The position numbers and the translations under genes were made by a program. The notes under the pieces were generated by a model. It was not told the origin of the DNA. It saw only the letters and a list, made by a program, of their open reading frames with translations, and did not search any database. Shown in pieces: positions 1 through 28,384 of a stretch of 28,384 nucleotides of DNA (its first letter is position 1; the number at the start of each line of letters is the position of its first letter). Source of the DNA: Macrostomum lignano. Its lineage: Eukaryota. Location of the stretch: positions 1 through 28,384 of the forward strand of contig NIVC01005027.1 in the NCBI GenBank assembly GCA_002269645.1, in the 5' to 3' direction.

Positions 1-3000
1 TGTTTGTGGCCGACGAGGACAAGCAGAGAAGTACGTGCAAGTGAACAGGGAGACGCCGAAGGAGCCTAAGAAGGCGCTGAGCCCAAGCCAACTAGAGAAT
101 GTGGAATTCCCCGAGCTGCCGAAGCTGCCCAAGTTTGTGCGCGTCGTGCTGAAGACGCTGCCAGGCAAGGCGACTAGCGTCAGAGCCGAGTTGAAGGCTT
201 GCCACAAGCCGAAGACTACCGTTAGGACGACACAACAGACGACGACCACGACGGGACGCACAACACCGAGCACGACAAGCAGGAAGCCGGGATCGCCAGC
301 CGCCGAGAAGCTCACCTTCCCGATGCCGTCGATGCCAGGAGCGACAGGAAAGACAACGACAACGCCGGCGCCTACTACAACAACAAGACGCCCGTGTGCC
401 TGCGCAAGAGCGTGAAACTGTTTGAGAGCGGCGAGCTCTGCCAGCGACGCGCTGACCAAGGCGGAGAAGCTCCCAGAGAAGAAGGAGTTCACACCCAAGG
501 AGCGAAAGGAGGCCCTGCTGCCTAGCGTAGTGGACTGCCAGTGAAGCGAGGCGGTTCCACCCAGCTCACCTTCCAGGTGGACCGTCTGCCAAAGACTGCC
601 AGCCTGATGAAGGTGGTGCTCAAGAGCAGCACGCCGGACAGTGTTCGCGAGGTGACCGTGTTTGTGGCCGACGAGGACAAGCCAGAGAAGTACGTGCAAG
701 TGAACAGGGAGACGCCGAAGGAGCCTAAGAAGGCGCTGAGCCCAAGCCAACTAGAGAATGTGGAATTCCCGAGCTGCCGAAGCTGCCCAAGTTTGTGCGC
801 GTCGTGCTGAAGACGCTGCCAGGCAAGGCGACTAGCGTCAGAGCCGAGTTGAAGGCTTGCCACAAGCCGAAGACTACCGTTAGGACGACACAACAGACGA
901 CGACCACGACGGGACGCACAACACCGAGCACGACAAGCAGGAAGCCGGGATCGCCAGCCGCCGAGAAGCTCACCTTCCCGATGCCGTCGATGCCAGGAGC
1001 GACAGGAAAGACAACGACAACGCCGGCGCCTACTACAACAACAAGACGCCCGGCCGTGTGCCTGCGCAAGAGCGTGAAACTGTTTGAGAGCGGCGAGCTG
1101 CCCAGCGACGCGCTGACCAAGGCGGAGAAGCTCCCAGAGAAGAAGGAGTTCACACCCAAGGAGCGAAAGGAGGCCCTGCTGCCTAGCGGTAGTGGACTGC
1201 CAGTGAAGCGAGGCGGTTCCACCCAGCTCACCTTCCAGGTGGACCGTCTGCCAAAGACTGCCAGCCTGATGAAGGTGGTGCTCAAGAGCAGCACGCCGGA
1301 CAGTGTTCGCGAGGTGACCGTGTTTGTGGCCGACGAGGACAAGCCAGAGAAGTACGTGCAAGTGAACAGGGAGACGCCGAAGGAGCCTAAGAAGGCGCTG
1401 AGCCCAAGCCAACTAGAGAATGTGGAATTCCCCGAGCTGCCGAAGCTGCCCAAGTTTGTGCGCGTCGTGCTGAAGACGCTGCCAGGCAAGGCGACTAGCG
1501 TCAGAGCCGAGTTGAAGGCTTGCCACAAGCCGAAGACTACCGTTAGGACGACACAACAGACGACGACCACGACGGGACGCACAACACCGAGCACGACAAG
1601 CAGGAAGCCGGGATCGCCAGCCGCCGAGAAGCTCACCTTCCCGATGCCGTCGATGCCAGGAGCGACAGGAAAGACAACGACAACGCCGGCGCCTACTACA
1701 ACAACAAGACGCCCGGCCGTGTGCCTGCGCAAGAGCGTGAAACTGTTTGAGAGCGGCGAGCTGCCCAGCGACGCGCTGACCAAGGCGGAGAAGCTCCCAG
1801 AGAAGAAGGAGTTCACACCCAAGGAGCGAAAGGAGGCCCTGCTGCCTAGCGGTAGTGGACTGCCAGTGAAGCGAGGCGGTTCCACCCAGCTCACCTTCCA
1901 GGTGGACCGTCTGCCAAAGACTGCCAGCCTGATGAAGGTGGTGCTCAAGAGCAGCACGCCGGACAGTGTTCGCGAGGTGACCGTGTTTGTGGCCGACGAG
2001 GACAAGCCAGAGAAGTACGTGCAAGTGAACAGGGAGACGCCGAAGGAGCCTAAGAAGGCGCTGAGCCCAAGCCAACTAGAGAATGTGGAATTCCCCGAGC
2101 TGCCGAAGCTGCCCAAGTTTGTGCGCGTCGTGCTGAAGACGCTGCCAGGCAAGGCGACTAGCGTCAGAGCCGAGTTGAAGGCTTGCCACAAGCCGAAGAC
2201 TACCGTTAGGACGACACAACAGACGACGACCACGACGGGACGCACAACACCGAGCACGACAAGCAGGAAGCCGGGATCGCCAGCCGCCGAGAAGCTCACC
2301 TTCCCGATGCCGTCGATGCCAGGAGCGACAGGAAAGACAACGACAACGCCGGCGCCTACTACAACAACAAGACGCCCGGCCGTGTGCCTGCGCAAGAGCG
2401 TGAAACTGTTTGAGAGCGGCGAGCTGCCCAGCGACGCGCTGACCAAGGCGGAGAAGCTCCCAGAGAAGAAGGAGTTCACACCCAAGGAGCGAAAGGAGGC
2501 CCTGCTGCCTAGCGGTAGTGGACTGCCAGTGAAGCGAGGCGGTTCCACCCAGCTCACCTTCCAGGTGGACCGTCTGCCAAAGACTGCCAGCCTGATGAAG
2601 GTGGTGCTCAAGAGCAGCACGCCGGACAGTGTTCGCGAGGTGACCGTGTTTGTGGCCGACGAGGACAAGCCAGAGAAGTACGTGCAAGTGAACAGGGAGA
2701 CGCCGAAGGAGCCTAAGAAGGCGCTGAGCCCAAGCCAACTAGAGAATGTGGAATTCCCCGAGCTGCCGAAGCTGCCCAAGTTTGTGCGCGTCGTGCTGAA
2801 GACGCTGCCAGGCAAGGCGACTAGCGTCAGAGCCGAGTTGAAGGCTTGCCACAAGCCGAAGACTACCGTTAGGACGACACAACAGACGACGACCACGACG
2901 GGACGCACAACACCGAGCACGACAAGCAGGAAGCCGGGATCGCCAGCCGCCGAGAAGCTCACCTTCCCGATGCCGTCGATGCCAGGAGCGACAGGAAAGA

Positions 3001-6000
3001 CAACGACAACGCCGGCGCCTACTACAACAACAAGACGCCCGGCCGTGTGCCTGCGCAAGAGCGTGAAACTGTTTGAGAGCGGCGAGCTGCCCAGCGACGC
3101 GCTGACCAAGGCGGAGAAGCTCCCAGAGAAGAAGGAGTTCACACCCAAGGAGCGAAAGGAGGCCCTGCTGCCTAGCGGTAGTGGACTGCCAGTGAAGCGA
3201 GGCGGTTCCACCCAGCTCACCTTCCAGGTGGACCGTCTGCCAAAGACTGCCAGCCTGATGAAGGTGGTGCTCAAGAGCAGCACGCCGGACAGTGTTCGCG
3301 AGGTGACCGTGTTTGTGGCCGACGAGGACAAGCCAGAGAAGTACGTGCAAGTGAACAGGGAGACGCCGAAGGAGCCTAAGAAGGCGCTGAGCCCAAGCCA
3401 ACTAGAGAATGTGGAATTCCCCGAGCTGCCGAAGCTGCCCAAGTTTGTGCGCGTCGTGCTGAAGACGCTGCCAGGCAAGGCGACTAGCGTCAGAGCCGAG
3501 TTGAAGGCTTGCCACAAGCCGAAGACTACCGTTAGGACGACACAACAGACGACGACCACGACGGGACGCACAACACCGAGCACGACAAGCAGGAAGCCGG
3601 GATCGCCAGCCGCCGAGAAGCTCACCTTCCCGATGCCGTCGATGCCAGGAGCGACAGGAAAGACAACGACAACGCCGGCGCCTACTACAACAACAAGACG
3701 CCCGGCCGTGTGCCTGCGCAAGAGCGTGAAACTGTTTGAGAGCGGCGAGCTGCCCAGCGACGCGCTGACCAAGGCGGAGAAGCTCCCAGAGAAGAAGGAG
3801 TTCACACCCAAGGAGCGAAAGGAGGCCCTGCTGCCTAGCGGTAGTGGACTGCCAGTGAAGCGAGGCGGTTCCACCCAGCTCACCTTCCAGGTGGACCGTC
3901 TGCCAAAGACTGCCAGCCTGATGAAGGTGGTGCTCAAGAGCAGCACGCCGGACAGTGTTCGCGAGGTGACCGTGTTTGTGGCCGACGAGGACAAGCCAGA
4001 GAAGTACGTGCAAGTGAACAGGGAGACGCCGAAGGAGCCTAAGAAGGCGCTGAGCCCAAGCCAACTAGAGAATGTGGAATTCCCCGAGCTGCCGAAGCTG
4101 CCCAAGTTTGTGCGCGTCGTGCTGAAGACGCTGCCAGGCAAGGCGACTAGCGTCAGAGCCGAGTTGAAGGCTTGCCACAAGCCGAAGACTACCGTTAGGA
4201 CGACACAACAGACGACGACCACGACGGGACGCACAACACCGAGCACGACAAGCAGGAAGCCGGGATCGCCAGCCGCCGAGAAGCTCACCTTCCCGATGCC
4301 GTCGATGCCAGGAGCGACAGGAAAGACAACGACAACGCCGGCGCCTACTACAACAACAAGACGCCCGGCCGTGTGCCTGCGCAAGAGCGTGAAACTGTTT
4401 GAGAGCGGCGAGCTGCCCAGCGACGCGCTGACCAAGGCGGAGAAGCTCCCAGAGAAGAAGGAGTTCACACCCAAGGAGCGAAAGGAGGCCCTGCTGCCTA
4501 GCGGTAGTGGACTGCCAGTGAAGCGAGGCGGTTCCACCCAGCTCACCTTCCAGGTGGACCGTCTGCCAAAGACTGCCAGCCTGATGAAGGTGGTGCTCAA
4601 GAGCAGCACGCCGGACAGTGTTCGCGAGGTGACCGTGTTTGTGGCCGACGAGGACAAGCCAGAGAAGTACGTGCAAGTGAACAGGGAGACGCCGAAGGAG
4701 CCTAAGAAGGCGCTGAGCCCAAGCCAACTAGAGAATGTGGAATTCCCCGAGCTGCCGAAGCTGCCCAAGTTTGTGCGCGTCGTGCTGAAGACGCTGCCAG
4801 GCAAGGCGACTAGCGTCAGAGCCGAGTTGAAGGCTTGCCACAAGCCGAAGACTACCGTTAGGACGACACAACAGACGACGACCACGACGGGACGCACAAC
4901 ACCGAGCACGACAAGCAGGAAGCCGGGATCGCCAGCCGCCGAGAAGCTCACCTTCCCGATGCCGTCGATGCCAGGAGCGACAGGAAAGACAACGACAACG
5001 CCGGCGCCTACTACAACAACAAGACGCCCGGCCGTGTGCCTGCGCAAGAGCGTGAAACTGTTTGAGAGCGGCGAGCTGCCCAGCGACGCGCTGACCAAGG
5101 CGGAGAAGCTCCCAGAGAAGAAGGAGTTCACACCCAAGGAGCGAAAGGAGGCCCTGCTGCCTAGCGGTAGTGGACTGCCAGTGAAGCGAGGCGGTTCCAC
5201 CCAGCTCACCTTCCAGGTGGACCGTCTGCCAAAGACTGCCAGCCTGATGAAGGTGGTGCTCAAGAGCAGCACGCCGGACAGTGTTCGCGAGGTGACCGTG
5301 TTTGTGGCCGACGAGGACAAGCCAGAGAAGTACGTGCAAGTGAACAGGGAGACGCCGAAGGAGCCTAAGAAGGCGCTGAGCCCAAGCCAACTAGAGAATG
5401 TGGAATTCCCCGAGCTGCCGAAGCTGCCCAAGTTTGTGCGCGTCGTGCTGAAGACGCTGCCAGGCAAGGCGACTAGCGTCAGAGCCGAGTTGAAGGCTTG
5501 CCACAAGCCGAAGACTACCGTTAGGACGACACAACAGACGACGACCACGACGGGACGCACAACACCGAGCACGACAAGCAGGAAGCCGGGATCGCCAGCC
5601 GCCGAGAAGCTCACCTTCCCGATGCCGTCGATGCCAGGAGCGACAGGAAAGACAACGACAACGCCGGCGCCTACTACAACAACAAGACGCCCGGCCGTGT
5701 GCCTGCGCAAGAGCGTGAAACTGTTTGAGAGCGGCGAGCTGCCCAGCGACGCGCTGACCAAGGCGGAGAAGCTCCCAGAGAAGAAGGAGTTCACACCCAA
5801 GGAGCGAAAGGAGGCCCTGCTGCCTAGCGGTAGTGGACTGCCAGTGAAGCGAGGCGGTTCCACCCAGCTCACCTTCCAGGTGGACCGTCTGCCAAAGACT
5901 GCCAGCCTGATGAAGGTGGTGCTCAAGAGCAGCACGCCGGACAGTGTTCGCGAGGTGACCGTGTTTGTGGCCGACGAGGACAAGCCAGAGAAGTACGTGC

Positions 6001-9000
6001 AAGTGAACAGGGAGACGCCGAAGGAGCCTAAGAAGGCGCTGAGCCCAAGCCAACTAGAGAATGTGGAATTCCCCGAGCTGCCGAAGCTGCCCAAGTTTGT
6101 GCGCGTCGTGCTGAAGACGCTGCCAGGCAAGGCGACTAGCGTCAGAGCCGAGTTGAAGGCTTGCCACAAGCCGAAGACTACCGTTAGGACGACACAACAG
6201 ACGACGACCACGACGGGACGCACAACACCGAGCACGACAAGCAGGAAGCCGGGATCGCCAGCCGCCGAGAAGCTCACCTTCCCGATGCCGTCGATGCCAG
6301 GAGCGACAGGAAAGACAACGACAACGCCGGCGCCTACTACAACAACAAGACGCCCGGCCGTGTGCCTGCGCAAGAGCGTGAAACTGTTTGAGAGCGGCGA
6401 GCTGCCCAGCGACGCGCTGACCAAGGCGGAGAAGCTCCCAGAGAAGAAGGAGTTCACACCCAAGGAGCGAAAGGAGGCCCTGCTGCCTAGCGGTAGTGGA
6501 CTGCCAGTGAAGCGAGGCGGTTCCACCCAGCTCACCTTCCAGGTGGACCGTCTGCCAAAGACTGCCAGCCTGATGAAGGTGGTGCTCAAGAGCAGCACGC
6601 CGGACAGTGTTCGCGAGGTGACCGTGTTTGTGGCCGACGAGGACAAGCCAGAGAAGTACGTGCAAGTGAACAGGGAGACGCCGAAGGAGCCTAAGAAGGC
6701 GCTGAGCCCAAGCCAACTAGAGAATGTGGAATTCCCCGAGCTGCCGAAGCTGCCCAAGTTTGTGCGCGTCGTGCTGAAGACGCTGCCAGGCAAGGCGACT
6801 AGCGTCAGAGCCGAGTTGAAGGCTTGCCACAAGCCGAAGACTACCGTTAGGACGACACAACAGACGACGACCACGACGGGACGCACAACACCGAGCACGA
6901 CAAGCAGGAAGCCGGGATCGCCAGCCGCCGAGAAGCTCACCTTCCCGATGCCGTCGATGCCAGGAGCGACAGGAAAGACAACGACAACGCCGGCGCCTAC
7001 TACAACAACAAGACGCCCGGCCGTGTGCCTGCGCAAGAGCGTGAAACTGTTTGAGAGCGGCGAGCTGCCCAGCGACGCGCTGACCAAGGCGGAGAAGCTC
7101 CCAGAGAAGAAGGAGTTCACACCCAAGGAGCGAAAGGAGGCCCTGCTGCCTAGCGGTAGTGGACTGCCAGTGAAGCGAGGCGGTTCCACCCAGCTCACCT
7201 TCCAGGTGGACCGTCTGCCAAAGACTGCCAGCCTGATGAAGGTGGTGCTCAAGAGCAGCACGCCGGACAGTGTTCGCGAGGTGACCGTGTTTGTGGCCGA
7301 CGAGGACAAGCCAGAGAAGTACGTGCAAGTGAACAGGGAGACGCCGAAGGAGCCTAAGAAGGCGCTGAGCCCAAGCCAACTAGAGAATGTGGAATTCCCC
7401 GAGCTGCCGAAGCTGCCCAAGTTTGTGCGCGTCGTGCTGAAGACGCTGCCAGGCAAGGCGACTAGCGTCAGAGCCGAGTTGAAGGCTTGCCACAAGCCGA
7501 AGACTACCGTTAGGACGACACAACAGACGACGACCACGACGGGACGCACAACACCGAGCACGACAAGCAGGAAGCCGGGATCGCCAGCCGCCGAGAAGCT
7601 CACCTTCCCGATGCCGTCGATGCCAGGAGCGACAGGAAAGACAACGACAACGCCGGCGCCTACTACAACAACAAGACGCCCGGCCGTGTGCCTGCGCAAG
7701 AGCGTGAAACTGTTTGAGAGCGGCGAGCTGCCCAGCGACGCGCTGACCAAGGCGGAGAAGCTCCCAGAGAAGAAGGAGTTCACACCCAAGGAGCGAAAGG
7801 AGGCCCTGCTGCCTAGCGGTAGTGGACTGCCAGTGAAGCGAGGCGGTTCCACCCAGCTCACCTTCCAGGTGGACCGTCTGCCAAAGACTGCCAGCCTGAT
7901 GAAGGTGGTGCTCAAGAGCAGCACGCCGGACAGTGTTCGCGAGGTGACCGTGTTTGTGGCCGACGAGGACAAGCCAGAGAAGTACGTGCAAGTGAACAGG
8001 GAGACGCCGAAGGAGCCTAAGAAGGCGCTGAGCCCAAGCCAACTAGAGAATGTGGAATTCCCCGAGCTGCCGAAGCTGCCCAAGTTTGTGCGCGTCGTGC
8101 TGAAGACGCTGCCAGGCAAGGCGACTAGCGTCAGAGCCGAGTTGAAGGCTTGCCACAAGCCGAAGACTACCGTTAGGACGACACAACAGACGACGACCAC
8201 GACGGGACGCACAACACCGAGCACGACAAGCAGGAAGCCGGGATCGCCAGCCGCCGAGAAGCTCACCTTCCCGATGCCGTCGATGCCAGGAGCGACAGGA
8301 AAGACAACGACAACGCCGGCGCCTACTACAACAACAAGACGCCCGGCCGTGTGCCTGCGCAAGAGCGTGAAACTGTTTGAGAGCGGCGAGCTGCCCAGCG
8401 ACGCGCTGACCAAGGCGGAGAAGCTCCCAGAGAAGAAGGAGTTCACACCCAAGGAGCGAAAGGAGGCCCTGCTGCCTAGCGGTAGTGGACTGCCAGTGAA
8501 GCGAGGCGGTTCCACCCAGCTCACCTTCCAGGTGGACCGTCTGCCAAAGACTGCCAGCCTGATGAAGGTGGTGCTCAAGAGCAGCACGCCGGACAGTGTT
8601 CGCGAGGTGACCGTGTTTGTGGCCGACGAGGACAAGCCAGAGAAGTACGTGCAAGTGAACAGGGAGACGCCGAAGGAGCCTAAGAAGGCGCTGAGCCCAA
8701 GCCAACTAGAGAATGTGGAATTCCCCGAGCTGCCGAAGCTGCCCAAGTTTGTGCGCGTCGTGCTGAAGACGCTGCCAGGCAAGGCGACTAGCGTCAGAGC
8801 CGAGTTGAAGGCTTGCCACAAGCCGAAGACTACCGTTAGGACGACACAACAGACGACGACCACGACGGGACGCACAACACCGAGCACGACAAGCAGGAAG
8901 CCGGGATCGCCAGCCGCCGAGAAGCTCACCTTCCCGATGCCGTCGATGCCAGGAGCGACAGGAAAGACAACGACAACGCCGGCGCCTACTACAACAACAA

Positions 9001-12000
9001 GACGCCCGGCCGTGTGCCTGCGCAAGAGCGTGAAACTGTTTGAGAGCGGCGAGCTGCCCAGCGACGCGCTGACCAAGGCGGAGAAGCTCCCAGAGAAGAA
9101 GGAGTTCACACCCAAGGAGCGAAAGGAGGCCCTGCTGCCTAGCGGTAGTGGACTGCCAGTGAAGCGAGGCGGTTCCACCCAGCTCACCTTCCAGGTGGAC
9201 CGTCTGCCAAAGACTGCCAGCCTGATGAAGGTGGTGCTCAAGAGCAGCACGCCGGACAGTGTTCGCGAGGTGACCGTGTTTGTGGCCGACGAGGACAAGC
9301 CAGAGAAGTACGTGCAAGTGAACAGGGAGACGCCGAAGGAGCCTAAGAAGGCGCTGAGCCCAAGCCAACTAGAGAATGTGGAATTCCCCGAGCTGCCGAA
9401 GCTGCCCAAGTTTGTGCGCGTCGTGCTGAAGACGCTGCCAGGCAAGGCGACTAGCGTCAGAGCCGAGTTGAAGGCTTGCCACAAGCCGAAGACTACCGTT
9501 AGGACGACACAACAGACGACGACCACGACGGGACGCACAACACCGAGCACGACAAGCAGGAAGCCGGGATCGCCAGCCGCCGAGAAGCTCACCTTCCCGA
9601 TGCCGTCGATGCCAGGAGCGACAGGAAAGACAACGACAACGCCGGCGCCTACTACAACAACAAGACGCCCGGCCGTGTGCCTGCGCAAGAGCGTGAAACT
9701 GTTTGAGAGCGGCGAGCTGCCCAGCGACGCGCTGACCAAGGCGGAGAAGCTCCCAGAGAAGAAGGAGTTCACACCCAAGGAGCGAAAGGAGGCCCTGCTG
9801 CCTAGCGGTAGTGGACTGCCAGTGAAGCGAGGCGGTTCCACCCAGCTCACCTTCCAGGTGGACCGTCTGCCAAAGACTGCCAGCCTGATGAAGGTGGTGC
9901 TCAAGAGCAGCACGCCGGACAGTGTTCGCGAGGTGACCGTGTTTGTGGCCGACGAGGACAAGCCAGAGAAGTACGTGCAAGTGAACAGGGAGACGCCGAA
10001 GGAGCCTAAGAAGGCGCTGAGCCCAAGCCAACTAGAGAATGTGGAATTCCCCGAGCTGCCGAAGCTGCCCAAGTTTGTGCGCGTCGTGCTGAAGACGCTG
10101 CCAGGCAAGGCGACTAGCGTCAGAGCCGAGTTGAAGGCTTGCCACAAGCCGAAGACTACCGTTAGGACGACACAACAGACGACGACCACGACGGGACGCA
10201 CAACACCGAGCACGACAAGCAGGAAGCCGGGATCGCCAGCCGCCGAGAAGCTCACCTTCCCGATGCCGTCGATGCCAGGAGCGACAGGAAAGACAACGAC
10301 AACGCCGGCGCCTACTACAACAACAAGACGCCCGGCCGTGTGCCTGCGCAAGAGCGTGAAACTGTTTGAGAGCGGCGAGCTGCCCAGCGACGCGCTGACC
10401 AAGGCGGAGAAGCTCCCAGAGAAGAAGGAGTTCACACCCAAGGAGCGAAAGGAGGCCCTGCTGCCTAGCGGTAGTGGACTGCCAGTGAAGCGAGGCGGTT
10501 CCACCCAGCTCACCTTCCAGGTGGACCGTCTGCCAAAGACTGCCAGCCTGATGAAGGTGGTGCTCAAGAGCAGCACGCCGGACAGTGTTCGCGAGGTGAC
10601 CGTGTTTGTGGCCGACGAGGACAAGCCAGAGAAGTACGTGCAAGTGAACAGGGAGACGCCGAAGGAGCCTAAGAAGGCGCTGAGCCCAAGCCAACTAGAG
10701 AATGTGGAATTCCCGAGCTGCCGAAGCTGCCCAAGTTTGTGCGCGTCGTGCTGAAGACGCTGCCAGGCAAGGCGACTAGCGTCAGAGCCGAGTTGAAGGC
10801 TTGCCACAAGCCGAAGACTACCGTTAGGACGACACAACAGACGACGACCACGACGGGACGCACAACACCGAGCACGACAAGCAGGAAGCCGGGATCGCCA
10901 GCCGCCGAGAAGCTCACCTTCCCGATGCCGTCGATGCCAGGAGCGACAGGAAAGACAACGACAACGCCGGCGCCTACTACAACAACAAGACGCCCGGCCG
11001 TGTGCCTGCGCAAGAGCGTGAAACTGTTTGAGAGCGGCGAGCTGCCCAGCGACGCGCTGACCAAGGCGGAGAAGCTCCCAGAGAAGAAGGAGTTCACACC
11101 CAAGGAGCGAAAGGAGGCCCTGCTGCCTAGCGGTAGTGGACTGCCAGTGAAGCGAGGCGGTTCCACCCAGCTCACCTTCCAGGTGGACCGTCTGCCAAAG
11201 ACTGCCAGCCTGATGAAGGTGGTGCTCAAGAGCAGCACGCCGGACAGTGTTCGCGAGGTGACCGTGTTTGTGGCCGACGAGGACAAGCCAGAGAAGTACG
11301 TGCAAGTGAACAGGGAGACGCCGAAGGAGCCTAAGAAGGCGCTGAGCCCAAGCCAACTAGAGAATGTGGAATTCCCCGAGCTGCCGAAGCTGCCCAAGTT
11401 TGTGCGCGTCGTGCTGAAGACGCTGCCAGGCAAGGCGACTAGCGTCAGAGCCGAGTTGAAGGCTTGCCACAAGCCGAAGACTACCGTTAGGACGACACAA
11501 CAGACGACGACCACGACGGGACGCACAACACCGAGCACGACAAGCAGGAAGCCGGGATCGCCAGCCGCCGAGAAGCTCACCTTCCCGATGCCGTCGATGC
11601 CAGGAGCGACAGGAAAGACAACGACAACGCCGGCGCCTACTACAACAACAAGACGCCCGGCCGTGTGCCTGCGCAAGAGCGTGAAACTGTTTGAGAGCGG
11701 CGAGCTGCCCAGCGACGCGCTGACCAAGGCGGAGAAGCTCCCAGAGAAGAAGGAGTTCACACCCAAGGAGCGAAAGGAGGCCCTGCTGCCTAGCGGTAGT
11801 GGACTGCCAGTGAAGCGAGGCGGTTCCACCCAGCTCACCTTCCAGGTGGACCGTCTGCCAAAGACTGCCAGCCTGATGAAGGTGGTGCTCAAGAGCAGCA
11901 CGCCGGACAGTGTTCGCGAGGTGACCGTGTTTGTGGCCGACGAGGACAAGCCAGAGAAGTACGTGCAAGTGAACAGGGAGACGCCGAAGGAGCCTAAGAA

Positions 12001-15000
12001 GGCGCTGAGCCCAAGCCAACTAGAGAATGTGGAATTCCCCGAGCTGCCGAAGCTGCCCAAGTTTGTGCGCGTCGTGCTGAAGACGCTGCCAGGCAAGGCG
12101 ACTAGCGTCAGAGCCGAGTTGAAGGCTTGCCACAAGCCGAAGACTACCGTTAGGACGACACAACAGACGACGACCACGACGGGACGCACAACACCGAGCA
12201 CGACAAGCAGGAAGCCGGGATCGCCAGCCGCCGAGAAGCTCACCTTCCCGATGCCGTCGATGCCAGGAGCGACAGGAAAGACAACGACAACGCCGGCGCC
12301 TACTACAACAACAAGACGCCCGGCCGTGTGCCTGCGCAAGAGCGTGAAACTGTTTGAGAGCGGCGAGCTGCCCAGCGACGCGCTGACCAAGGCGGAGAAG
12401 CTCCCAGAGAAGAAGGAGTTCACACCCAAGGAGCGAAAGGAGGCCCTGCTGCCTAGCGGTAGTGGACTGCCAGTGAAGCGAGGCGGTTCCACCCAGCTCA
12501 CCTTCCAGGTGGACCGTCTGCCAAAGACTGCCAGCCTGATGAAGGTGGTGCTCAAGAGCAGCACGCCGGACAGTGTTCGCGAGGTGACCGTGTTTGTGGC
12601 CGACGAGGACAAGCCAGAGAAGTACGTGCAAGTGAACAGGGAGACGCCGAAGGAGCCTAAGAAGGCGCTGAGCCCAAGCCAACTAGAGAATGTGGAATTC
12701 CCCGAGCTGCCGAAGCTGCCCAAGTTTGTGCGCGTCGTGCTGAAGACGCTGCCAGGCAAGGCGACTAGCGTCAGAGCCGAGTTGAAGGCTTGCCACAAGC
12801 CGAAGACTACCGTTAGGACGACACAACAGACGACGACCACGACGGGACGCACAACACCGAGCACGACAAGCAGGAAGCCGGGATCGCCAGCCGCCGAGAA
12901 GCTCACCTTCCCGATGCCGTCGATGCCAGGAGCGACAGGAAAGACAACGACAACGCCGGCGCCTACTACAACAACAAGACGCCCGGCCGTGTGCCTGCGC
13001 AAGAGCGTGAAACTGTTTGAGAGCGGCGAGCTGCCCAGCGACGCGCTGACCAAGGCGGAGAAGCTCCCAGAGAAGAAGGAGTTCACACCCAAGGAGCGAA
13101 AGGAGGCCCTGCTGCCTAGCGGTAGTGGACTGCCAGTGAAGCGAGGCGGTTCCACCCAGCTCACCTTCCAGGTGGACCGTCTGCCAAAGACTGCCAGCCT
13201 GATGAAGGTGGTGCTCAAGAGCAGCACGCCGGACAGTGTTCGCGAGGTGACCGTGTTTGTGGCCGACGAGGACAAGCCAGAGAAGTACGTGCAAGTGAAC
13301 AGGGAGACGCCGAAGGAGCCTAAGAAGGCGCTGAGCCCAAGCCAACTAGAGAATGTGGAATTCCCCGAGCTGCCGAAGCTGCCCAAGTTTGTGCGCGTCG
13401 TGCTGAAGACGCTGCCAGGCAAGGCGACTAGCGTCAGAGCCGAGTTGAAGGCTTGCCACAAGCCGAAGACTACCGTTAGGACGACACAACAGACGACGAC
13501 CACGACGGGACGCACAACACCGAGCACGACAAGCAGGAAGCCGGGATCGCCAGCCGCCGAGAAGCTCACCTTCCCGATGCCGTCGATGCCAGGAGCGACA
13601 GGAAAGACAACGACAACGCCGGCGCCTACTACAACAACAAGACGCCCGGCCGTGTGCCTGCGCAAGAGCGTGAAACTGTTTGAGAGCGGCGAGCTGCCCA
13701 GCGACGCGCTGACCAAGGCGGAGAAGCTCCCAGAGAAGAAGGAGTTCACACCCAAGGAGCGAAAGGAGGCCCTGCTGCCTAGCGGTAGTGGACTGCCAGT
13801 GAAGCGAGGCGGTTCCACCCAGCTCACCTTCCAGGTGGACCGTCTGCCAAAGACTGCCAGCCTGATGAAGGTGGTGCTCAAGAGCAGCACGCCGGACAGT
13901 GTTCGCGAGGTGACCGTGTTTGTGGCCGACGAGGACAAGCCAGAGAAGTACGTGCAAGTGAACAGGGAGACGCCGAAGGAGCCTAAGAAGGCGCTGAGCC
14001 CAAGCCAACTAGAGAATGTGGAATTCCCCGAGCTGCCGAAGCTGCCCAAGTTTGTGCGCGTCGTGCTGAAGACGCTGCCAGGCAAGGCGACTAGCGTCAG
14101 AGCCGAGTTGAAGGCTTGCCACAAGCCGAAGACTACCGTTAGGACGACACAACAGACGACGACCACGACGGGACGCACAACACCGAGCACGACAAGCAGG
14201 AAGCCGGGATCGCCAGCCGCCGAGAAGCTCACCTTCCCGATGCCGTCGATGCCAGGAGCGACAGGAAAGACAACGACAACGCCGGCGCCTACTACAACAA
14301 CAAGACGCCCGGCCGTGTGCCTGCGCAAGAGCGTGAAACTGTTTGAGAGCGGCGAGCTGCCCAGCGACGCGCTGACCAAGGCGGAGAAGCTCCCAGAGAA
14401 GAAGGAGTTCACACCCAAGGAGCGAAAGGAGGCCCTGCTGCCTAGCGGTAGTGGACTGCCAGTGAAGCGAGGCGGTTCCACCCAGCTCACCTTCCAGGTG
14501 GACCGTCTGCCAAAGACTGCCAGCCTGATGAAGGTGGTGCTCAAGAGCAGCACGCCGGACAGTGTTCGCGAGGTGACCGTGTTTGTGGCCGACGAGGACA
14601 AGCCAGAGAAGTACGTGCAAGTGAACAGGGAGACGCCGAAGGAGCCTAAGAAGGCGCTGAGCCCAAGCCAACTAGAGAATGTGGAATTCCCCGAGCTGCC
14701 GAAGCTGCCCAAGTTTGTGCGCGTCGTGCTGAAGACGCTGCCAGGCAAGGCGACTAGCGTCAGAGCCGAGTTGAAGGCTTGCCACAAGCCGAAGACTACC
14801 GTTAGGACGACACAACAGACGACGACCACGACGGGACGCACAACACCGAGCACGACAAGCAGGAAGCCGGGATCGCCAGCCGCCGAGAAGCTCACCTTCC
14901 CGATGCCGTCGATGCCAGGAGCGACAGGAAAGACAACGACAACGCCGGCGCCTACTACAACAACAAGACGCCCGGCCGTGTGCCTGCGCAAGAGCGTGAA

Positions 15001-18000
15001 ACTGTTTGAGAGCGGCGAGCTGCCCAGCGACGCGCTGACCAAGGCGGAGAAGCTCCCAGAGAAGAAGGAGTTCACACCCAAGGAGCGAAAGGAGGCCCTG
15101 CTGCCTAGCGGTAGTGGACTGCCAGTGAAGCGAGGCGGTTCCACCCAGCTCACCTTCCAGGTGGACCGTCTGCCAAAGACTGCCAGCCTGATGAAGGTGG
15201 TGCTCAAGAGCAGCACGCCGGACAGTGTTCGCGAGGTGACCGTGTTTGTGGCCGACGAGGACAAGCCAGAGAAGTACGTGCAAGTGAACAGGGAGACGCC
15301 GAAGGAGCCTAAGAAGGCGCTGAGCCCAAGCCAACTAGAGAATGTGGAATTCCCCGAGCTGCCGAAGCTGCCCAAGTTTGTGCGCGTCGTGCTGAAGACG
15401 CTGCCAGGCAAGGCGACTAGCGTCAGAGCCGAGTTGAAGGCTTGCCACAAGCCGAAGACTACCGTTAGGACGACACAACAGACGACGACCACGACGGGAC
15501 GCACAACACCGAGCACGACAAGCAGGAAGCCGGGATCGCCAGCCGCCGAGAAGCTCACCTTCCCGATGCCGTCGATGCCAGGAGCGACAGGAAAGACAAC
15601 GACAACGCCGGCGCCTACTACAACAACAAGACGCCCGGCCGTGTGCCTGCGCAAGAGCGTGAAACTGTTTGAGAGCGGCGAGCTGCCCAGCGACGCGCTG
15701 ACCAAGGCGGAGAAGCTCCCAGAGAAGAAGGAGTTCACACCCAAGGAGCGAAAGGAGGCCCTGCTGCCTAGCGGTAGTGGACTGCCAGTGAAGCGAGGCG
15801 GTTCCACCCAGCTCACCTTCCAGGTGGACCGTCTGCCAAAGACTGCCAGCCTGATGAAGGTGGTGCTCAAGAGCAGCACGCCGGACAGTGTTCGCGAGGT
15901 GACCGTGTTTGTGGCCGACGAGGACAAGCCAGAGAAGTACGTGCAAGTGAACAGGGAGACGCCGAAGGAGCCTAAGAAGGCGCTGAGCCCAAGCCAACTA
16001 GAGAATGTGGAATTCCCCGAGCTGCCGAAGCTGCCCAAGTTTGTGCGCGTCGTGCTGAAGACGCTGCCAGGCAAGGCGACTAGCGTCAGAGCCGAGTTGA
16101 AGGCTTGCCACAAGCCGAAGACTACCGTTAGGACGACACAACAGACGACGACCACGACGGGACGCACAACACCGAGCACGACAAGCAGGAAGCCGGGATC
16201 GCCAGCCGCCGAGAAGCTCACCTTCCCGATGCCGTCGATGCCAGGAGCGACAGGAAAGACAACGACAACGCCGGCGCCTACTACAACAACAAGACGCCCG
16301 GCCGTGTGCCTGCGCAAGAGCGTGAAACTGTTTGAGAGCGGCGAGCTGCCCAGCGACGCGCTGACCAAGGCGGAGAAGCTCCCAGAGAAGAAGGAGTTCA
16401 CACCCAAGGAGCGAAAGGAGGCCCTGCTGCCTAGCGGTAGTGGACTGCCAGTGAAGCGAGGCGGTTCCACCCAGCTCACCTTCCAGGTGGACCGTCTGCC
16501 AAAGACTGCCAGCCTGATGAAGGTGGTGCTCAAGAGCAGCACGCCGGACAGTGTTCGCGAGGTGACCGTGTTTGTGGCCGACGAGGACAAGCCAGAGAAG
16601 TACGTGCAAGTGAACAGGGAGACGCCGAAGGAGCCTAAGAAGGCGCTGAGCCCAAGCCAACTAGAGAATGTGGAATTCCCCGAGCTGCCGAAGCTGCCCA
16701 AGTTTGTGCGCGTCGTGCTGAAGACGCTGCCAGGCAAGGCGACTAGCGTCAGAGCCGAGTTGAAGGCTTGCCACAAGCCGAAGACTACCGTTAGGACGAC
16801 ACAACAGACGACGACCACGACGGGACGCACAACACCGAGCACGACAAGCAGGAAGCCGGGATCGCCAGCCGCCGAGAAGCTCACCTTCCCGATGCCGTCG
16901 ATGCCAGGAGCGACAGGAAAGACAACGACAACGCCGGCGCCTACTACAACAACAAGACGCCCGGCCGTGTGCCTGCGCAAGAGCGTGAAACTGTTTGAGA
17001 GCGGCGAGCTGCCCAGCGACGCGCTGACCAAGGCGGAGAAGCTCCCAGAGAAGAAGGAGTTCACACCCAAGGAGCGAAAGGAGGCCCTGCTGCCTAGCGG
17101 TAGTGGACTGCCAGTGAAGCGAGGCGGTTCCACCCAGCTCACCTTCCAGGTGGACCGTCTGCCAAAGACTGCCAGCCTGATGAAGGTGGTGCTCAAGAGC
17201 AGCACGCCGGACAGTGTTCGCGAGGTGACCGTGTTTGTGGCCGACGAGGACAAGCCAGAGAAGTACGTGCAAGTGAACAGGGAGACGCCGAAGGAGCCTA
17301 AGAAGGCGCTGAGCCCAAGCCAACTAGAGAATGTGGAATTCCCCGAGCTGCCGAAGCTGCCCAAGTTTGTGCGCGTCGTGCTGAAGACGCTGCCAGGCAA
17401 GGCGACTAGCGTCAGAGCCGAGTTGAAGGCTTGCCACAAGCCGAAGACTACCGTTAGGACGACACAACAGACGACGACCACGACGGGACGCACAACACCG
17501 AGCACGACAAGCAGGAAGCCGGGATCGCCAGCCGCCGAGAAGCTCACCTTCCCGATGCCGTCGATGCCAGGAGCGACAGGAAAGACAACGACAACGCCGG
17601 CGCCTACTACAACAACAAGACGCCCGGCCGTGTGCCTGCGCAAGAGCGTGAAACTGTTTGAGAGCGGCGAGCTGCCCAGCGACGCGCTGACCAAGGCGGA
17701 GAAGCTCCCAGAGAAGAAGGAGTTCACACCCAAGGAGCGAAAGGAGGCCCTGCTGCCTAGCGGTAGTGGACTGCCAGTGAAGCGAGGCGGTTCCACCCAG
17801 CTCACCTTCCAGGTGGACCGTCTGCCAAAGACTGCCAGCCTGATGAAGGTGGTGCTCAAGAGCAGCACGCCGGACAGTGTTCGCGAGGTGACCGTGTTTG
17901 TGGCCGACGAGGACAAGCCAGAGAAGTACGTGCAAGTGAACAGGGAGACGCCGAAGGAGCCTAAGAAGGCGCTGAGCCCAAGCCAACTAGAGAATGTGGA

Positions 18001-20022
18001 ATTCCCCGAGCTGCCGAAGCTGCCCAAGTTTGTGCGCGTCGTGCTGAAGACGCTGCCAGGCAAGGCGACTAGCGTCAGAGCCGAGTTGAAGGCTTGCCAC
18101 AAGCCGAAGACTACCGTTAGGACGACACAACAGACGACGACCACGACGGGACGCACAACACCGAGCACGACAAGCAGGAAGCCGGGATCGCCAGCCGCCG
18201 AGAAGCTCACCTTCCCGATGCCGTCGATGCCAGGAGCGACAGGAAAGACAACGACAACGCCGGCGCCTACTACAACAACAAGACGCCCGGCCGTGTGCCT
18301 GCGCAAGAGCGTGAAACTGTTTGAGAGCGGCGAGCTGCCCAGCGACGCGCTGACCAAGGCGGAGAAGCTCCCAGAGAAGAAGGAGTTCACACCCAAGGAG
18401 CGAAAGGAGGCCCTGCTGCCTAGCGGTAGTGGACTGCCAGTGAAGCGAGGCGGTTCCACCCAGCTCACCTTCCAGGTGGACCGTCTGCCAAAGACTGCCA
18501 GCCTGATGAAGGTGGTGCTCAAGAGCAGCACGCCGGACAGTGTTCGCGAGGTGACCGTGTTTGTGGCCGACGAGGACAAGCCAGAGAAGTACGTGCAAGT
18601 GAACAGGGAGACGCCGAAGGAGCCTAAGAAGGCGCTGAGCCCAAGCCAACTAGAGAATGTGGAATTCCCCGAGCTGCCGAAGCTGCCCAAGTTTGTGCGC
18701 GTCGTGCTGAAGACGCTGCCAGGCAAGGCGACTAGCGTCAGAGCCGAGTTGAAGGCTTGCCACAAGCCGAAGACTACCGTTAGGACGACACAACAGACGA
18801 CGACCACGACGGGACGCACAACACCGAGCACGACAAGCAGGAAGCCGGGATCGCCAGCCGCCGAGAAGCTCACCTTCCCGATGCCGTCGATGCCAGGAGC
18901 GACAGGAAAGACAACGACAACGCCGGCGCCTACTACAACAACAAGACGCCCGGCCGTGTGCCTGCGCAAGAGCGTGAAACTGTTTGAGAGCGGCGAGCTG
19001 CCCAGCGACGCGCTGACCAAGGCGGAGAAGCTCCCAGAGAAGAAGGAGTTCACACCCAAGGAGCGAAAGGAGGCCCTGCTGCCTAGCGGTAGTGGACTGC
19101 CAGTGAAGCGAGGCGGTTCCACCCAGCTCACCTTCCAGGTGGACCGTCTGCCAAAGACTGCCAGCCTGATGAAGGTGGTGCTCAAGAGCAGCACGCCGGA
19201 CAGTGTTCGCGAGGTGACCGTGTTTGTGGCCGACGAGGACAAGCCAGAGAAGTACGTGCAAGTGAACAGGGAGACGCCGAAGGAGCCTAAGAAGGCGCTA
19301 AGCCCAAGCCAACTAGAGAATGTGGAATTCCCCGAGCTGCCGAAGCTGCCCAAGTTTGTGCGCGTCGTGCTGAAGACGCTGCCAGGCAAGGCGACTAGCG
19401 TCAGAGCCGAGTTGAAGGCTTGCCACAAGCCGAAGACTACCGTTAGGACGACACAACAGACGACGACCACGACGGGACGCACAACACCGAGCACGACAAG
19501 CAGGAAGCCGGGATCGCCAGCCGCCGAGAAGCTCACCTTCCCGATGCCGTCGATGCCAGGAGCGACAGGAAAGACAACGACAACGCCGGCGCCTACTACA
19601 ACAACAAGACGCCCGGCCGTGTGCCTGCGCAAGAGCGTGAAACTGTTTGAGAGCGGCGAGCTGCCCAGCGACGCGCTGACCAAGGCGGAGAAGCTCCCAG
19701 AGAAGAAGGAGTTCACACCCAAGGAGCGAAAGGAGGCCCTGCTAGCGGTAGTGGACTGCCAGTGAAGCGAGGCGGTTCCACCCAGCTCACCTTCCAGGTG
19801 GACCGCTGCCAAAGACTGCCAGCCTGATGAAGGTGGTGCTCAAGAGCAGCACGCCGGACAGTGTTCGCGAGGTGACCGTGTTTGTGGCCGACGAGGACAA
19901 GCCAGAGAAGTACGTGCAAGTGAACAGGGAGACGCCGAAGGAGCCTAAGAAGGCGCTGAGCCCAAGCCAACTAGAGAATGTGGAATTCCCCGAGCTGCCG
20001 AAGCTGCCCAAGTTTTGCGCGT
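1..20022 (+). repeat. Coding tandem array, 663-bp unit, about 30.2 copies in window, open at the 5' edge
   Basis: One GAATTC per unit at 104, 763, 1425+663k (to 10707), 11369+663k (to 19325) and 19983 = 31 sites. The ORF track translations recur with an exact 221-aa / 663-nt period. Confidence 0.99.
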
Positions 20023-20176
20023 TATAGTTCAAATTTTGGCTGAGAATTCCACGAATGTTCTTTGGATCTATTTTCGTGTCAGGATGATTTTTATCCATGT
20101 ATGAATTGCACACACAACGGGACTTCGTCATTGACGGCTCGATTGTATCGCTTAATGGAGTCAAATGTGATCATCA
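1..20176 (+). CDS. Giant exon: array of [discoidin/F5-8C-like module + Thr/Pro-rich linker] repeats, diverged terminal strand and start of a vWC-like module
   Basis: ORFs 795-10754 (3319 aa) and 10739-19765 (3008 aa) are the same repeat frame split by a 1-nt deletion at ~10714. After 20022 the frame-corrected reading continues KFVRVIVQILAENSTNVxLDLFSCQDDFYPCMNCTH..DFVIDGSIVSLNGVKCDH up to the donor CA|GTAAGT at 20177. Confidence 0.85.
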
Positions 20177-23100
20177 GTAAGTGTTTAACGCGACTTGTAT
20201 TTTGGAGTTAAAGTTTTTGTTTAATTGTTTTATGAATTTCTTCGTTTTTAGTGTGTGCCGGAAACGATCGTGGGAGCCTCTTTATGACTGCTCGTCATGG
20301 AGTTCCTGGTCAAACTGCTCGTCGGAATGCGATGCCGGATTCAAGACTAGGATGAAGATCTGTCGTCTAGTTTCCGGGATCTGATGGCAAGGCAAAATCT
20401 GACGTCGTTGGAAAAGTGCTTTAACCAGGTCGAGCGAGAACCGTGTTTTAACAGAAGATGCTCTAGTATGTATTTTTTGCAATGCTCTTCTTCGTCACTT
20501 GAATTTTCGTTAATCTACTGCAATTTTGTTTTTTTTTTCAGAAACTGAGTGCAACCCTGCAGAATGGGGTCCCTGGAGCCCGTGCTCTGGAGAGTGCAGC
20601 ACTTTGCTTTCAGAGCGGAAGCGGCAGCCGGGCAGCGCTGTGTTGTCAGAATTTTGCAAGAAAGTTCAACTGCCAGAATCGCGCTTGTGCCCGAAACGAA
20701 AAGTGCCGTAAGTTAGAATCTGCTTTTTATTAGTATTCCTTCTTTGTATACCGAGACGCATTCCATTGTGCTTTACTATTCTTATTTAGTCTTGCTCTTT
20801 TAAAGTAGGATTAAATCATTTTCCTCTTTCAGTGTGCAAGGATCCCAATGCAGCGTGGAAACAACTGCTCAAACCAATGTCCTTTCACATGCGGCCACCT
20901 CTCCGAGCAATCTGCGTGTGTCATGACCTCTGCCTGCGTGCCTGGTGCGCGGCAAGCCAGCTATTACCTGCAGGACGGCCGCTGCGTACCGCAGTCGCAG
21001 TGCCGCTGCCCAGGTCTCACACCAACTACATTGGCGATTAGTACAACTGCACTGACGACTCCCAGTACTGGAGCCGCTGCCGCCTTGTTTGTGTCTTACT
21101 CAAGTCCAAAGGCTCGAATTCGCGGAACCGCCGCTCCTGACAAAATCTCAATGCTGATTCCGGATCTCAACCTATTGATCCCCGCACTGCCAACTATCGT
21201 AGGAGGTGGAGCTTCAAGCCAGCGATGGCGCTGACTTGAAATCAACGTCAGTTAGCGTTGGCGCTAAACCAATCCGCCTGCGACTTCCAGTTTCGCAAGC
21301 GCCACGCATCCGGGCACGGCAGCGCCGGATCGTGCGTCAATGCTCATCCCCATGCTTCCTGGCAAACCAGCTGCTACCCCTGTGAAGCCGGCTACGACTG
21401 CGACAGCACGACTCCTACAACACCGGTCAGGATTCGAGGCACTGCAGCGCCAGACGGAGTAAACCTGCTGATCCCTACGCTATCACTGGGCTCAGCTGCT
21501 AATACCACAACTATGGCTCCCAGTACAAACTGTTCCAACGACAACTGCGGCGGCATCTGTAGCACAGTTGCATCCGTGAATGGAATTCCCGCCGCACCTT
21601 CTAACGCTGCAACGCCAGGCGCTTTTGCTCCGGGAGTAACGAGCGGGTCGTCAGGCAGCTTCACAGTGAAGGGCTTTGTTTCTCCGCTCAAGGACTTGGT
21701 AAAGCCAACACACATGGGTGCGTTCGAGTAACGTCTCTGCTTAAACATGAAACGGCGCCTCCACCGCCCCACAGGCCCGGAGGCAACCACGGACGGTTCC
21801 AACATTCAGCATTCCGACTGCCGCCCAAGTTCCACCTACCTCACCATCGGAGGCAGGCCGGCTTTCAGGCTGCCGGGCCAGTTTAAACCGCCTCCGGCGT
21901 TCCGTCCACCCGGCGGTGGCAGCTTTGGAAAGTTTAATCCTGCAAGCCAGTTTTCCGCCTGCCGGAGCTGGCTCTTTCAATCCGCCGGGAAAGCCAGGCA
22001 CAAAGAATTCGAGTCCGTCTGTCTCACACTCCGGCCGCGGCTAGCCTGCCCAACCGGTGACTCCTAAGTCATCAAGCATCGACCCCGGCTCCCCCACCAG
22101 GCCTAAAGCCAGTCCCATCAGGCCAGCAGCTTCAGTTGCGCCCACTAAACGACTACAAAGGCGCCAGTGCCGATGTCGAGCCAGGGAACCAGAATTCGTG
22201 CACTGCTGCCGACGATCGCGTGGACCTACGAATTCCAACTCTGCCGAACTTGCTGCCTCTGCCAACTTCTCCAAGGACTAAGCTGTTTACAAAGCGCTCA
22301 ACGCCGTCAACTAGATCCATGCCGACATTGGTCCCATACAAGCGCTACCGCTAAGCGAAAAACTTACTTCGGCCGCTCCAGTCACTAGCAAGCTCTACGC
22401 CCATCTTTCCCGGGTATTCCGCCAGCGGACCGCACGCGCCGCCCGGTGGACAAGGTTCCAGCCGGCAACGCCTAAAGCCGACAACAGTTGCGACAACAAC
22501 ATCGATGGGTACTCGAGCTACTAACAGTGGGTGATGATTGGTGGCAGCAACTGTACATGCACATCAGGCAAGACCACCTGCGTTGGAGGGCACGAGGACT
22601 CGCTAGCTGCCTGGTCTACGTGGACAGCGTGGTCCAACTGCAGCGCCGCACTGTGGCCAGGCAAGCAAGCAGTACAGGTTCCGCCAGTGTTCTGGCCCAG
22701 CCTGCGTTGGAAAACGGTCACGCCAATGAGTCCAGAGCTTGCACCGGAGTGGACTGCTACTGCGTCTTCAGCCGAGCCAACTACAGTGGCTGCTAACTGA
22801 TGATTACTATCACGCCGAGATGTGGGTCGAACGTGACGGAAAACCAGCCTGAGCAGTCCTCTGGAAACAGTGAACGACGGCGATAGACCAACGGCTCGGT
22901 GCTGCAGGTCGGCTGCCTTCGTTGCACCTGCAAGGACGGCGCGATTTGCCTGCAAAACTGCAGCGCTGCGCAGCGACTGTCAATGGCGCCTGGCAGCCGT
23001 GGCACACGTGCAGTGCACCTGCGGAGGCGGCTTGCAGACAAGACTACGGACGATTCACAAGCCAGCTGTAGCCGACGGTGCGCCTTGCCAGGCGAGCGGC

Positions 23101-27900: not shown

Positions 27901-28384
27901 AGTCTCACTCAGGGTGGTACAGTCTCATCAGGGAGGCACGGTCTCACTCAGGGAGTACAGTCTCACTAGGGAGGTACAGTCTCACTCAGGGGGTACAGTC
28001 TCACTCAGGGAGGTACAGTCTCACTCAGGTGGTACAGTCTCCTCGGAGCACAGTCTCACTCAGGGAGGCACAGTCTCACTCAGGGTGGTACAGGTCTCAC
28101 TCAGGGAGCACAGTCTCACTCAGGGAGGCACAGTCTCACTCAGGGTGGTACAGTCTCACTCAGGGGTACAGTCTCACTCAGGGAGGCACAGTCTCACTCA
28201 GGTGGTACAGTCTCACTCAGGGTGGAGAGTCTCACAAGCAGTCAATTCACTCAGAGAGGTACAATCTCACTCAGGGAGGCAGGTCTCACTCAGGGTGGTA
28301 CAGTCTCACTCAGGGAGTACAATCTCATTCAGGGAGGTACAATCTCACTCAGGGAGGTACAATTTCACTCAGGGAGGTACAGTC
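27901..28384. repeat. Intronic minisatellite, ~20-bp unit AGTCTCACTCAGGG(A/T)GG(T/C)AC, about 24-25 copies, running off the window end
   Basis: Directly visible tandem units with GGGTGGTA, GGGAGGCA and GGGAGGTA variants and small indels. Confidence 0.96.

Follow-up and report, generated by a model that had tools for sequence, protein, structure and literature searches.

Temporary attachment in the flatworm Macrostomum lignano relies on a two-protein glue whose surface-binding half is adhesion protein 2 (Mlig-ap2; GenBank MH586845; Wunderer et al. 2019, PMC6410801). Among the surface-binding proteins of reversible underwater glues, it is the best characterised. According to the literature, Mlig-ap2 begins with vWD/C8/TIL domains, continues in its centre with 21 copies of a 255-amino-acid (aa) repeat (RP-1) followed by 25 copies of a 221-aa repeat (RP-2, or 'repeat B'), and ends with trypsin-inhibitor-like (TIL) and thrombospondin type 1 (TSP-1) domains. 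About three quarters of the protein are repeats, RP-2 is termed "of unknown function" in the publications, and our literature search found none that gives the Mlig-ap2 repeats a fold. Here we analyzed the RP-2 array in a 28,384-nucleotide (nt) stretch of M. lignano DNA (contig NIVC01005027.1 of assembly GCA_002269645.1, positions 1 to 28,384; hereafter, the window). With somewhat better than even confidence, we favor a reading in which each RP-2 unit consists of a cationic jelly-roll bead that is an orphan in sequence and a cationic mucin tether, and adsorbs multivalently at low specificity.

Sea urchin Nectin, with six tandem discoidin (FA58C) domains, and sea star Sfp1 are likewise secreted temporary-adhesive glycoproteins with tandem jelly-roll domains. 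The Nectin domains are recognisable as FA58C, 47–55% identical to one another and directly adjacent, whereas the putative Mlig-ap2 beads are sequence orphans that are mutually identical, number about 50 and have long mucin-type linkers between them. The overall plan of Mlig-ap2 also resembles that of gel-forming mucins, in which CysD beads stand amid O-glycosylated Pro/Thr/Ser (PTS) stretches and vWD/C8/TIL assemblies form the N-terminus. CysD is a different, Cys-rich fold, whereas the Mlig-ap2 beads have two Cys and a predicted jelly roll and belong to a strongly cationic protein.

The window carries the 3′ part of Mlig-ap2

The window covers the 3′ part of the Mlig-ap2 gene, and the 221-aa unit encoded in it is the already published RP-2. 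After the 221-aa repeats the sequence continues into TSP-1 and TIL domains and shows sequence identity to the published protein; exons downstream of the array matched the Pfam models TSP_1 and TIL. The database relatives of the encoded module (residues 1–155 of the unit) were M. lignano proteins only, and these continue into thrombospondin type 1 repeats. Four published tryptic peptides (LFESGELPSDALTK, GGSTQLTFQVDR, EVTVFVADEDKPEK and ALSPSQLENVEFPELPK) are identical to the module (six peptides, all chosen from the module, were looked for), and originate from footprints, tails and PNA-lectin pull-downs analyzed by mass spectrometry. The epitope of the published anti-ap2 antibody, VNRETPKEPKKALS, also falls within the module, and occurs 31 times in the window versus 26 times in the published protein.

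The window differs from published Mlig-ap2 in its larger number of RP-2 copies and in carrying indels at the edges of the array as well as at 10711. In addition, at least one residue differs downstream: 20366–20464 encodes SSFRDLMARQ in the window and SSFRDLIARQ in both the published protein and the database protein P0001. Given the extra RP-2 copies and this residue difference, the window may represent a different allele, paralogue or assembly version from the published gene.

Anatomy of the RP-2 unit

Translation of 1059–1721 (plus strand), which we used as the reference unit, gave 221 aa with Cys at residues 1 and 155 only and no Trp. This bears out an earlier sequence-only reading of the same DNA, which had described two Cys 155 aa apart inclusive, no Trp and a 66-aa linker with 23 Thr. 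The module (155 aa, 1059–1523) has its Cys at the first and last positions, as expected of an F5/8 type C (F5/8C, or discoidin) domain, and is composed of 14% Lys, 10% Glu and 10% Pro, with one Tyr. The linker (residues 156–221) contains 23 Thr, 10 Pro and 4 Ser, amounting to 37 of its 66 residues (56%), a low-complexity composition rich in Thr, Ser and Pro that is typical of mucin-type PTS regions. The unit as a whole has a net charge of +18 and an isoelectric point of 10.1; about +7 of this charge lies in the core of the module (residues 47–155) and about +9 in the linker.

Judged by its sequence, the linker is probably a mucin-type O-glycosylated tether. In published experiments, PNA (Gal-β1,3-GalNAc) pulled down Mlig-ap2 and RNA interference against Mlig-ap2 abolished PNA staining, which links the glycan to the protein as a whole rather than to particular sites. 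The O-glycosylated Thr/Pro spacer of the sequence-only reading fits these observations and is not new: mucin-type O-glycosylation of the Thr-rich part of "repeat pattern B" was an earlier suggestion of the authors of that work. The repeat and the mucin-type linker idea are already published, and the new element here is a predicted domain with boundaries.

A predicted jelly-roll core in residues 47–155

The fold of the module was predicted in two single-sequence AlphaFold2 runs on different constructs. The complete 155-aa module gave a mean predicted local distance difference test score (pLDDT) of 63 and a predicted template modelling score (pTM) of 0.59, with residues 1–46 below 50 and residues 47–155 mostly at 70–84 per 10-residue block. 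The shorter construct, residues 41–158, gave a mean pLDDT of 75 and a pTM of 0.68. Eight strands, identical in the two runs, and one short helix were placed in residues 47–155, with pLDDT of 70–87 per 10-residue block.

When the first model was compared with the PDB using Foldseek, the top matches were Chlamydomonas IFT25 chains (E 1.8e-4 to 3.7e-4; template modelling score (TM) by target 0.50–0.55), followed by carbohydrate-binding modules (CBM16, CBM4, CBM32, CBM61, CBM22), APC10, a collagenase collagen-binding domain and human IFT25. The core model retrieved the same population of folds with a best E of 7.9e-3, including BIRC6 chains, the CUL7 E3-ligase complex (7z8b), the HECTD3 DOC domain, IFT25, CBM32, neuropilin b1, CASPR2 discoidin, a Bacteroides fragilis F5/8C domain (3nng), SUN and CBM6. 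The F5/8C members among these matches (IFT25, CBM32, neuropilin b1, CASPR2 and 3nng) had E from 1.8e-4 to 7e-2. Across both runs the best 50 matches were mostly of the type of SCOP b.18, the galactose-binding domain-like superfamily (F5/8C, CBM4/6/16/32, APC10/DOC and SUN), at TM of about 0.5 and for single-sequence models, while Ig, FN3 and nanobody chains were nearly absent and had low probability where present.

Structurally, the predicted core is matched best by IFT25/HSPB11 (2yc2, 2yc4, 1tvg), a minimal F5/8C-type jelly roll of similar size (about 130 aa) that consists of a single eight-stranded sandwich, as predicted for the core. The Chlamydomonas chains aligned to the core with TM by target of 0.48–0.55 and a root-mean-square deviation of 3.5–4.6 Å over about 105–125 aligned columns. 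Unlike the module, IFT25 is cytoplasmic, contains Trp and passes the Pfam F5_F8_type_C cut-off; it lacks the kind of terminal disulfide proposed for the module, and its sequence does not significantly resemble that of the module. Bacterial CBM32, CBM16 and CBM6, which were among the top Foldseek matches, have the predicted fold class and the size in common with the core, without a sequence relationship to the module; this likeness concerns the predicted fold only, and Mlig-ap2 adhesion is undisturbed by free galactose in published assays.

With moderate confidence, we conclude that residues 47–155 are predicted to form a jelly-roll sandwich resembling galactose-binding domains. The discoidin-like β-sandwich proposed by the sequence-only reading thus survives in part: a jelly roll close to F5/8C structures is predicted, but its folded part covers about 109 aa rather than all 155, and membership of the family is unproven. 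The modelling and Foldseek comparison that this reading had suggested did return galactose-binding-like matches, with TM of only about 0.5, marginal E, and residues 1–46 below a pLDDT of 50.

Conservation between RP-1 and RP-2

By sequence alignment, RP-1 and RP-2 are homologues: they are colinear and 28% identical over 223 aa (E 2e-10). The RP-1 sequence was obtained by optical character recognition of Fig. S12 in the supplement of the 2019 paper, with mass-spectrometry peptides and antibody epitopes serving to correct it, and because of this origin it may carry small errors. Its module comprises 145 aa with Cys at both ends (C1 and C145), each aligned with an RP-2 Cys, and its linker is longer than that of RP-2. 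The two linkers are otherwise dissimilar and both keep the short hydrophobic motif EK[LV]TFPMPS, present in every RP-2 unit, so the linker is not a featureless spacer. The N-terminal arm (residues 1–46) is 31% identical between RP-1 and RP-2, compared with 24% for the core, and the pieces F-[ED]-S-x-x-L and LLP-x(1-2)-G-x-GLP are common to both; since the arm is conserved at least as well as the core, it is more than a simple spacer and may belong to the domain.

Conservation within the core bears on whether the unit folds at all. The unit might instead be a charged, Pro-rich, mucin-like polyampholyte without a stable fold, whose Cys serve for intermolecular cross-linking only, in which case the AlphaFold2 sandwich would be hallucinated. 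The module is rich in Lys, Glu and Pro, lacks Trp, has one Tyr and belongs to no detectable family; these properties would suit such a polymer, as would the predicted disorder of residues 1–46 and of the linker, and in the publications the region figures as repeats without a known function. However, of the 28 hydrophobic residues in the strands of the RP-2 core, 20 have a hydrophobic counterpart in RP-1, so that the alternating strand pattern is kept at 24% core identity, and the largest indel between the two repeats, a deletion of 9 aa in RP-1, takes away the tip of the predicted β4–β5 hairpin. A core pLDDT of 70–87 with a pTM of 0.68 from a single sequence would also be unusual for disorder, and we regard an unfolded unit as very improbable.

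Tests for membership in the discoidin family

A stronger version of the fold assignment is that the module is a true, extremely diverged F5/8C domain comprising all 155 aa, closed by an N-to-C disulfide and binding a specific ligand (a glycan, lipid or mineral) through its barrel-end loops. We consider this unlikely, though to be taken seriously. Human IFT25 (1tvg), used as a positive control, passed the Pfam F5_F8_type_C model with 35.9 bits against a cut-off of 28.2, so the best structural neighbours, and with them the top matches of the first model, are genuine F5/8C members; CBM32, neuropilin b1, CASPR2 discoidin and 3nng appeared in both Foldseek lists or in the second. The Cys at the module ends, kept in RP-1, correspond to the disulfide arrangement of the family, the [ED]-S-x-x-L of the N-terminal arm and a strand-like VVEVKRV in RP-1 stand at the place of the first discoidin strand, and discoidin domains recur in the echinoderm temporary adhesives Nectin and Sfp1.

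The sequence comparisons, and several properties of the models, weigh against this assignment. Pfam hmmscan at E ≤ 10 matched no family to the 155-aa module or the 221-aa unit, PF00754 and PF22633 included; for the RP-1 module it returned only a noise match to PDZ_Tricorn, and again neither PF00754 nor PF22633 at E ≤ 10. A phmmer search of the module against all PDB chains gave noise only, and hmmsearch of the PDB with a profile of RP-1, RP-2 and the terminal variant (the RP profile) gave 0 matches at E ≤ 10. A hidden Markov model (HMM) built from 30 factor VIII C2 domains scored the module at −1.0 bits, a value reached or exceeded by 208 of the 1,399 shuffles that gave a score (2,000 were made). 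This profile is narrow, its seeded search having found almost only factor VIII orthologues, and the broad Pfam model serves as the family-wide test.

Profile alignments with hhalign agreed with these results. The probability was 0.2% for the module against the factor VIII C2 alignment and 0.3% against two IFT25 sequences (36 of 300 shuffles did equally well or better), and below 1% for the RP profile against F5/8C alignments; over the single-sequence and RP-1+RP-2 queries it ranged from 0.1 to 0.6%, with one shuffle calibration. The best local alignments, none of them significant, did fall in the register proposed by the sequence-only reading (module 131–155 with factor VIII C2 131–154, and module 63–102 with IFT25 52–88), which speaks in a small way for a true F5/8C domain, whereas the HMM and hhalign scores lie within the range of shuffles. 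Trp residues belong to the core motifs of the family (e.g., W-x-Q-V-D-L), and none is present in the RP-2 unit or the recovered RP-1 module. The match to three F5/8C sequence anchors described by the sequence-only reading is, by the Pfam, factor VIII C2 HMM and hhalign results, indistinguishable from chance, and the profile search it had proposed against Pfam F5_F8_type_C and the PDB found nothing significant.

As to the models, both runs used a single sequence because no orthologue alignment could be built, and the five models per run spanned pLDDT from 36 to 75. The Foldseek matches had TM of about 0.45–0.55, with E ≤ 1e-3 for three matches of the first model and 0 of the second. The N-terminal arm is conserved and yet received no confident model, being modelled as disordered, so the domain may be larger or organised differently than predicted. 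DOC, CBM4/6/16 and SUN matched about as well as F5/8C, which points to a fold at the superfamily level only; because TM is about 0.5 and these sister families match equally well, F5/8C membership of the module is not established.

Searches for orthologues returned little beyond the species itself. A word-indexed search with the module found two M. lignano fragments only, and the same two were all that a search for ap2b orthologues with the downstream TSP-1/TIL region recovered; a look-up of contigs encoding the proteins P0001 and P0002 gave none. Searched exhaustively with phmmer, 1.84 billion representatives yielded self-matches and two bacterial repeat proteins only, P0005 (E 2.9e-12) and P0006 (E 9.8e-6). 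We rejected these two as homologues: their scores are sums of 6–16 matches of −3 to 11 bits each with high bias. Both are surface proteins made of Ig-like repeats, which repeatedly cover module residues 45–98.

These weak matches show that the strand pattern also fits generic β-sandwiches, a further point against a specific jelly roll. The module could be another sandwich (Ig-like, FN3-like or a new fold), its jelly-roll likeness being an artefact of a low-information single-sequence model, and it would then be natural that only Ig-like-repeat proteins were found, that TM to jelly rolls is just about 0.5 and that confidence varies widely among the five models of each run. However, the summed, high-bias bacterial matches are not evidence of homology, chains of Ig, FN3 and nanobody type are nearly absent from the Foldseek lists, and two constructs gave the same strand pattern. 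We consider this possibility improbable.

A proposed model for surface adsorption

The favored reading, an orphan cationic jelly-roll bead on a mucin tether, suggests how the array might act. Each unit would consist of a Lys/Glu/Pro-rich arm of about 46 aa with Cys1, a cationic jelly roll of about 109 aa ending in Cys155, and a 66-aa mucin-type linker bearing core-1 O-glycans. The 255-aa RP-1 units upstream are diverged copies of the same plan, so the repetitive core would be a string of about 50 beads on glycosylated tethers. The glycosylated linkers would hold the chain extended and hydrated, in keeping with the electron-lucent rim of the secretory vesicles.

In published assays, footprints formed on anionic, cationic and hydrophobic monolayers and not on neutral hydrophilic EG6, and galactose or PNA in the medium left attachment unaffected. 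Because the unit is strongly cationic, and in view of these assays, we favor multivalent adsorption at low specificity, in which identical Lys-rich beads would adhere to anionic, cationic and hydrophobic surfaces, over lectin-type recognition. The null effect of galactose and PNA argues against an essential galactose-lectin role, and also counts against the module being a true F5/8C domain.

A disulfide between Cys1 and Cys155, like the mode of binding, is something we infer. If the two Cys pair within a module, the bead would be a pendant loop, with tension passing through the disulfide and the fold spared. Judging from established single-molecule work on disulfide-clamped domains, a bond joining the two ends would take up the tension of the chain and protect the fold from unfolding. 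The proposed bond therefore conflicts with the suggestion in the sequence-only reading that the repeat may be a force-unfolding element. Peptide mass spectrometry of the native protein would not distinguish bonds within a module from bonds between neighbouring modules, as the units do not differ from one another.

A bolder combination, which we regard as a long shot, is that the roughly 50 RP-1 and RP-2 units are true discoidin-type domains lacking Trp, stapled by disulfides into tension-shielded pendants on a cationic mucin backbone, and bind either surfaces or the Gal-β1,3-GalNAc of neighbouring linkers. If so, secretion would bring instant multivalent adhesion or self-gelation, and there would be a mechanistic, perhaps evolutionary, tie to the echinoderm discoidin adhesives Nectin and Sfp1.

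A probably folded bead of about 110–155 aa, with clear boundaries and two conserved Cys, makes the question of substrate contact experimentally tractable. Should the bead be discoidin-like, the temporary adhesives of flatworms and echinoderms would be built on a common principle; should it not be, a cationic β-sandwich with a mucin tether would still be a compact design for biomimetic adhesives. The value of these results is moderate, as the repeat and its likely O-glycosylation were published before and the fold rests on prediction.

Array architecture and other features of the window

The 663-bp tandem array fills the first ~20 kb of the window on the plus strand and runs off its 5′ end (Table 1). 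The first 25 bases of the unit occur at 30 positions, from 397 to 19622, at a spacing of 663 bp (662 bp twice). The DNA of the full-length units (n = 28, between 1059 and 19621) is 100% identical in 26; a 1-nt deletion at 10711 in one unit splits the open reading frame (ORF) into 795–10754 and 10739–19765, and a synonymous G>A lies at 19300 in one full-length unit. The sequence-only reading had counted 30 repeats, which is about right: there are 28 full units plus damaged or partial units at the edges, and the array continues past the 5′ edge. Tandem Repeats Finder, with a maximum period of 500, was blind to the array. An independent database protein, P0003, contains 16 copies of the canonical unit.

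Table 1 Positions of the RP-2 units, the parts of the reference unit and the downstream exons in the window
Feature	Position	Strand	Basis or remark
Partial RP-2 unit	1..396	+	Window edge; deletions relative to the canonical unit of 1 nt at 23 and 4 nt at 391
RP-2 unit, out of frame	397..1058	+	Small indels at 436-440, 526 and 767
28 full-length 663-bp RP-2 units, 221 aa each	1059..19621	+	Alignment, literature, mass-spectrometry peptides
Reference unit, residues 1-46: Cys1 and K/E/P-rich N-terminal arm	1059..1196	+	
Reference unit, residues 47-155: predicted eight-stranded β-sandwich core	1197..1523	+	Cys155 codon at 1521-1523
Reference unit, residues 156-221: Thr/Pro-rich cationic linker, probable mucin-type O-glycosylated tether	1524..1721	+	
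EKLTFPMPS hydrophobic motif inside the linker	1626..1652	+	EKVTFPMPS in the RP-1 linker
Terminal partial RP-2 unit, final Cys kept	19622..20079	+	Frameshifts relative to the published protein and P0001
Exon, first half of thrombospondin type 1 repeat (WSSWSNCS...)	20253..20366	+	Pfam
Exon, second thrombospondin type 1 repeat	20544..20696	+	Pfam
Exon, trypsin-inhibitor-like (TIL) Cys-rich domain	20833..21009	+	Pfam

The last unit follows the repeat until about 20015, where divergent sequence sets in. The last two strands of this terminal unit are a diverged copy (KFVRVIVQILAEMSTNVSLDLFSC in the published protein versus canonical KFVRVVLKTLPGKATSVRAELKAC) that retains the last Cys. After KFVRVIVQILAEMSTNVSLDLFSC, the published protein has a small Cys-rich stretch (QDDFYPCMNCTHNGTS...VKCDHH) instead of the Thr-rich linker (window 19622–20190).

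Nearly all differences from unit to unit, and between the window and the published protein or P0001, are indels of 1–4 nt (at 23, 391, 436–440, 526, 767, 10711, 19741, 19805, 20015, ~20058 and ~20130). Because perfect identity and indel-only differences typify the long-read assembly and polishing of tandem arrays, both the number of copies and the frameshifts may be artefacts of the assembly; alternatively, the indels possibly mark a decaying allele or paralogue.

The repeat has a GC content of 0.61 (0.76 at third codon positions) and an A-over-T skew of 0.34–0.41. Antisense ORFs run through the array on the minus strand (522–19812), the longest of 3543 aa, together with one 220-aa ORF per unit. 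We rejected these (e.g., 725–11356, minus strand) as genes and regard them as a by-product of the stop-poor, GC-rich repeat.

Downstream of the array, the Pro-rich region between the TIL exon and the later TSP-1 exons contains 2–4 copies of a motif, (R)IRGTAAPD followed by ...LIP.L (21115–21141, 21429–21455 and on to ~22300), and four copies of this motif are visible in the text of the published protein. Two 20-bp minisatellites lie outside the array, one at 24322–24496 (consensus CTTTTAATGTCGGTTGGTGA, 8.5 copies) and the other at 27901–28384 (consensus AGTCTCACTCAGGGAGGTAC, 25 copies), which runs off the end of the window.

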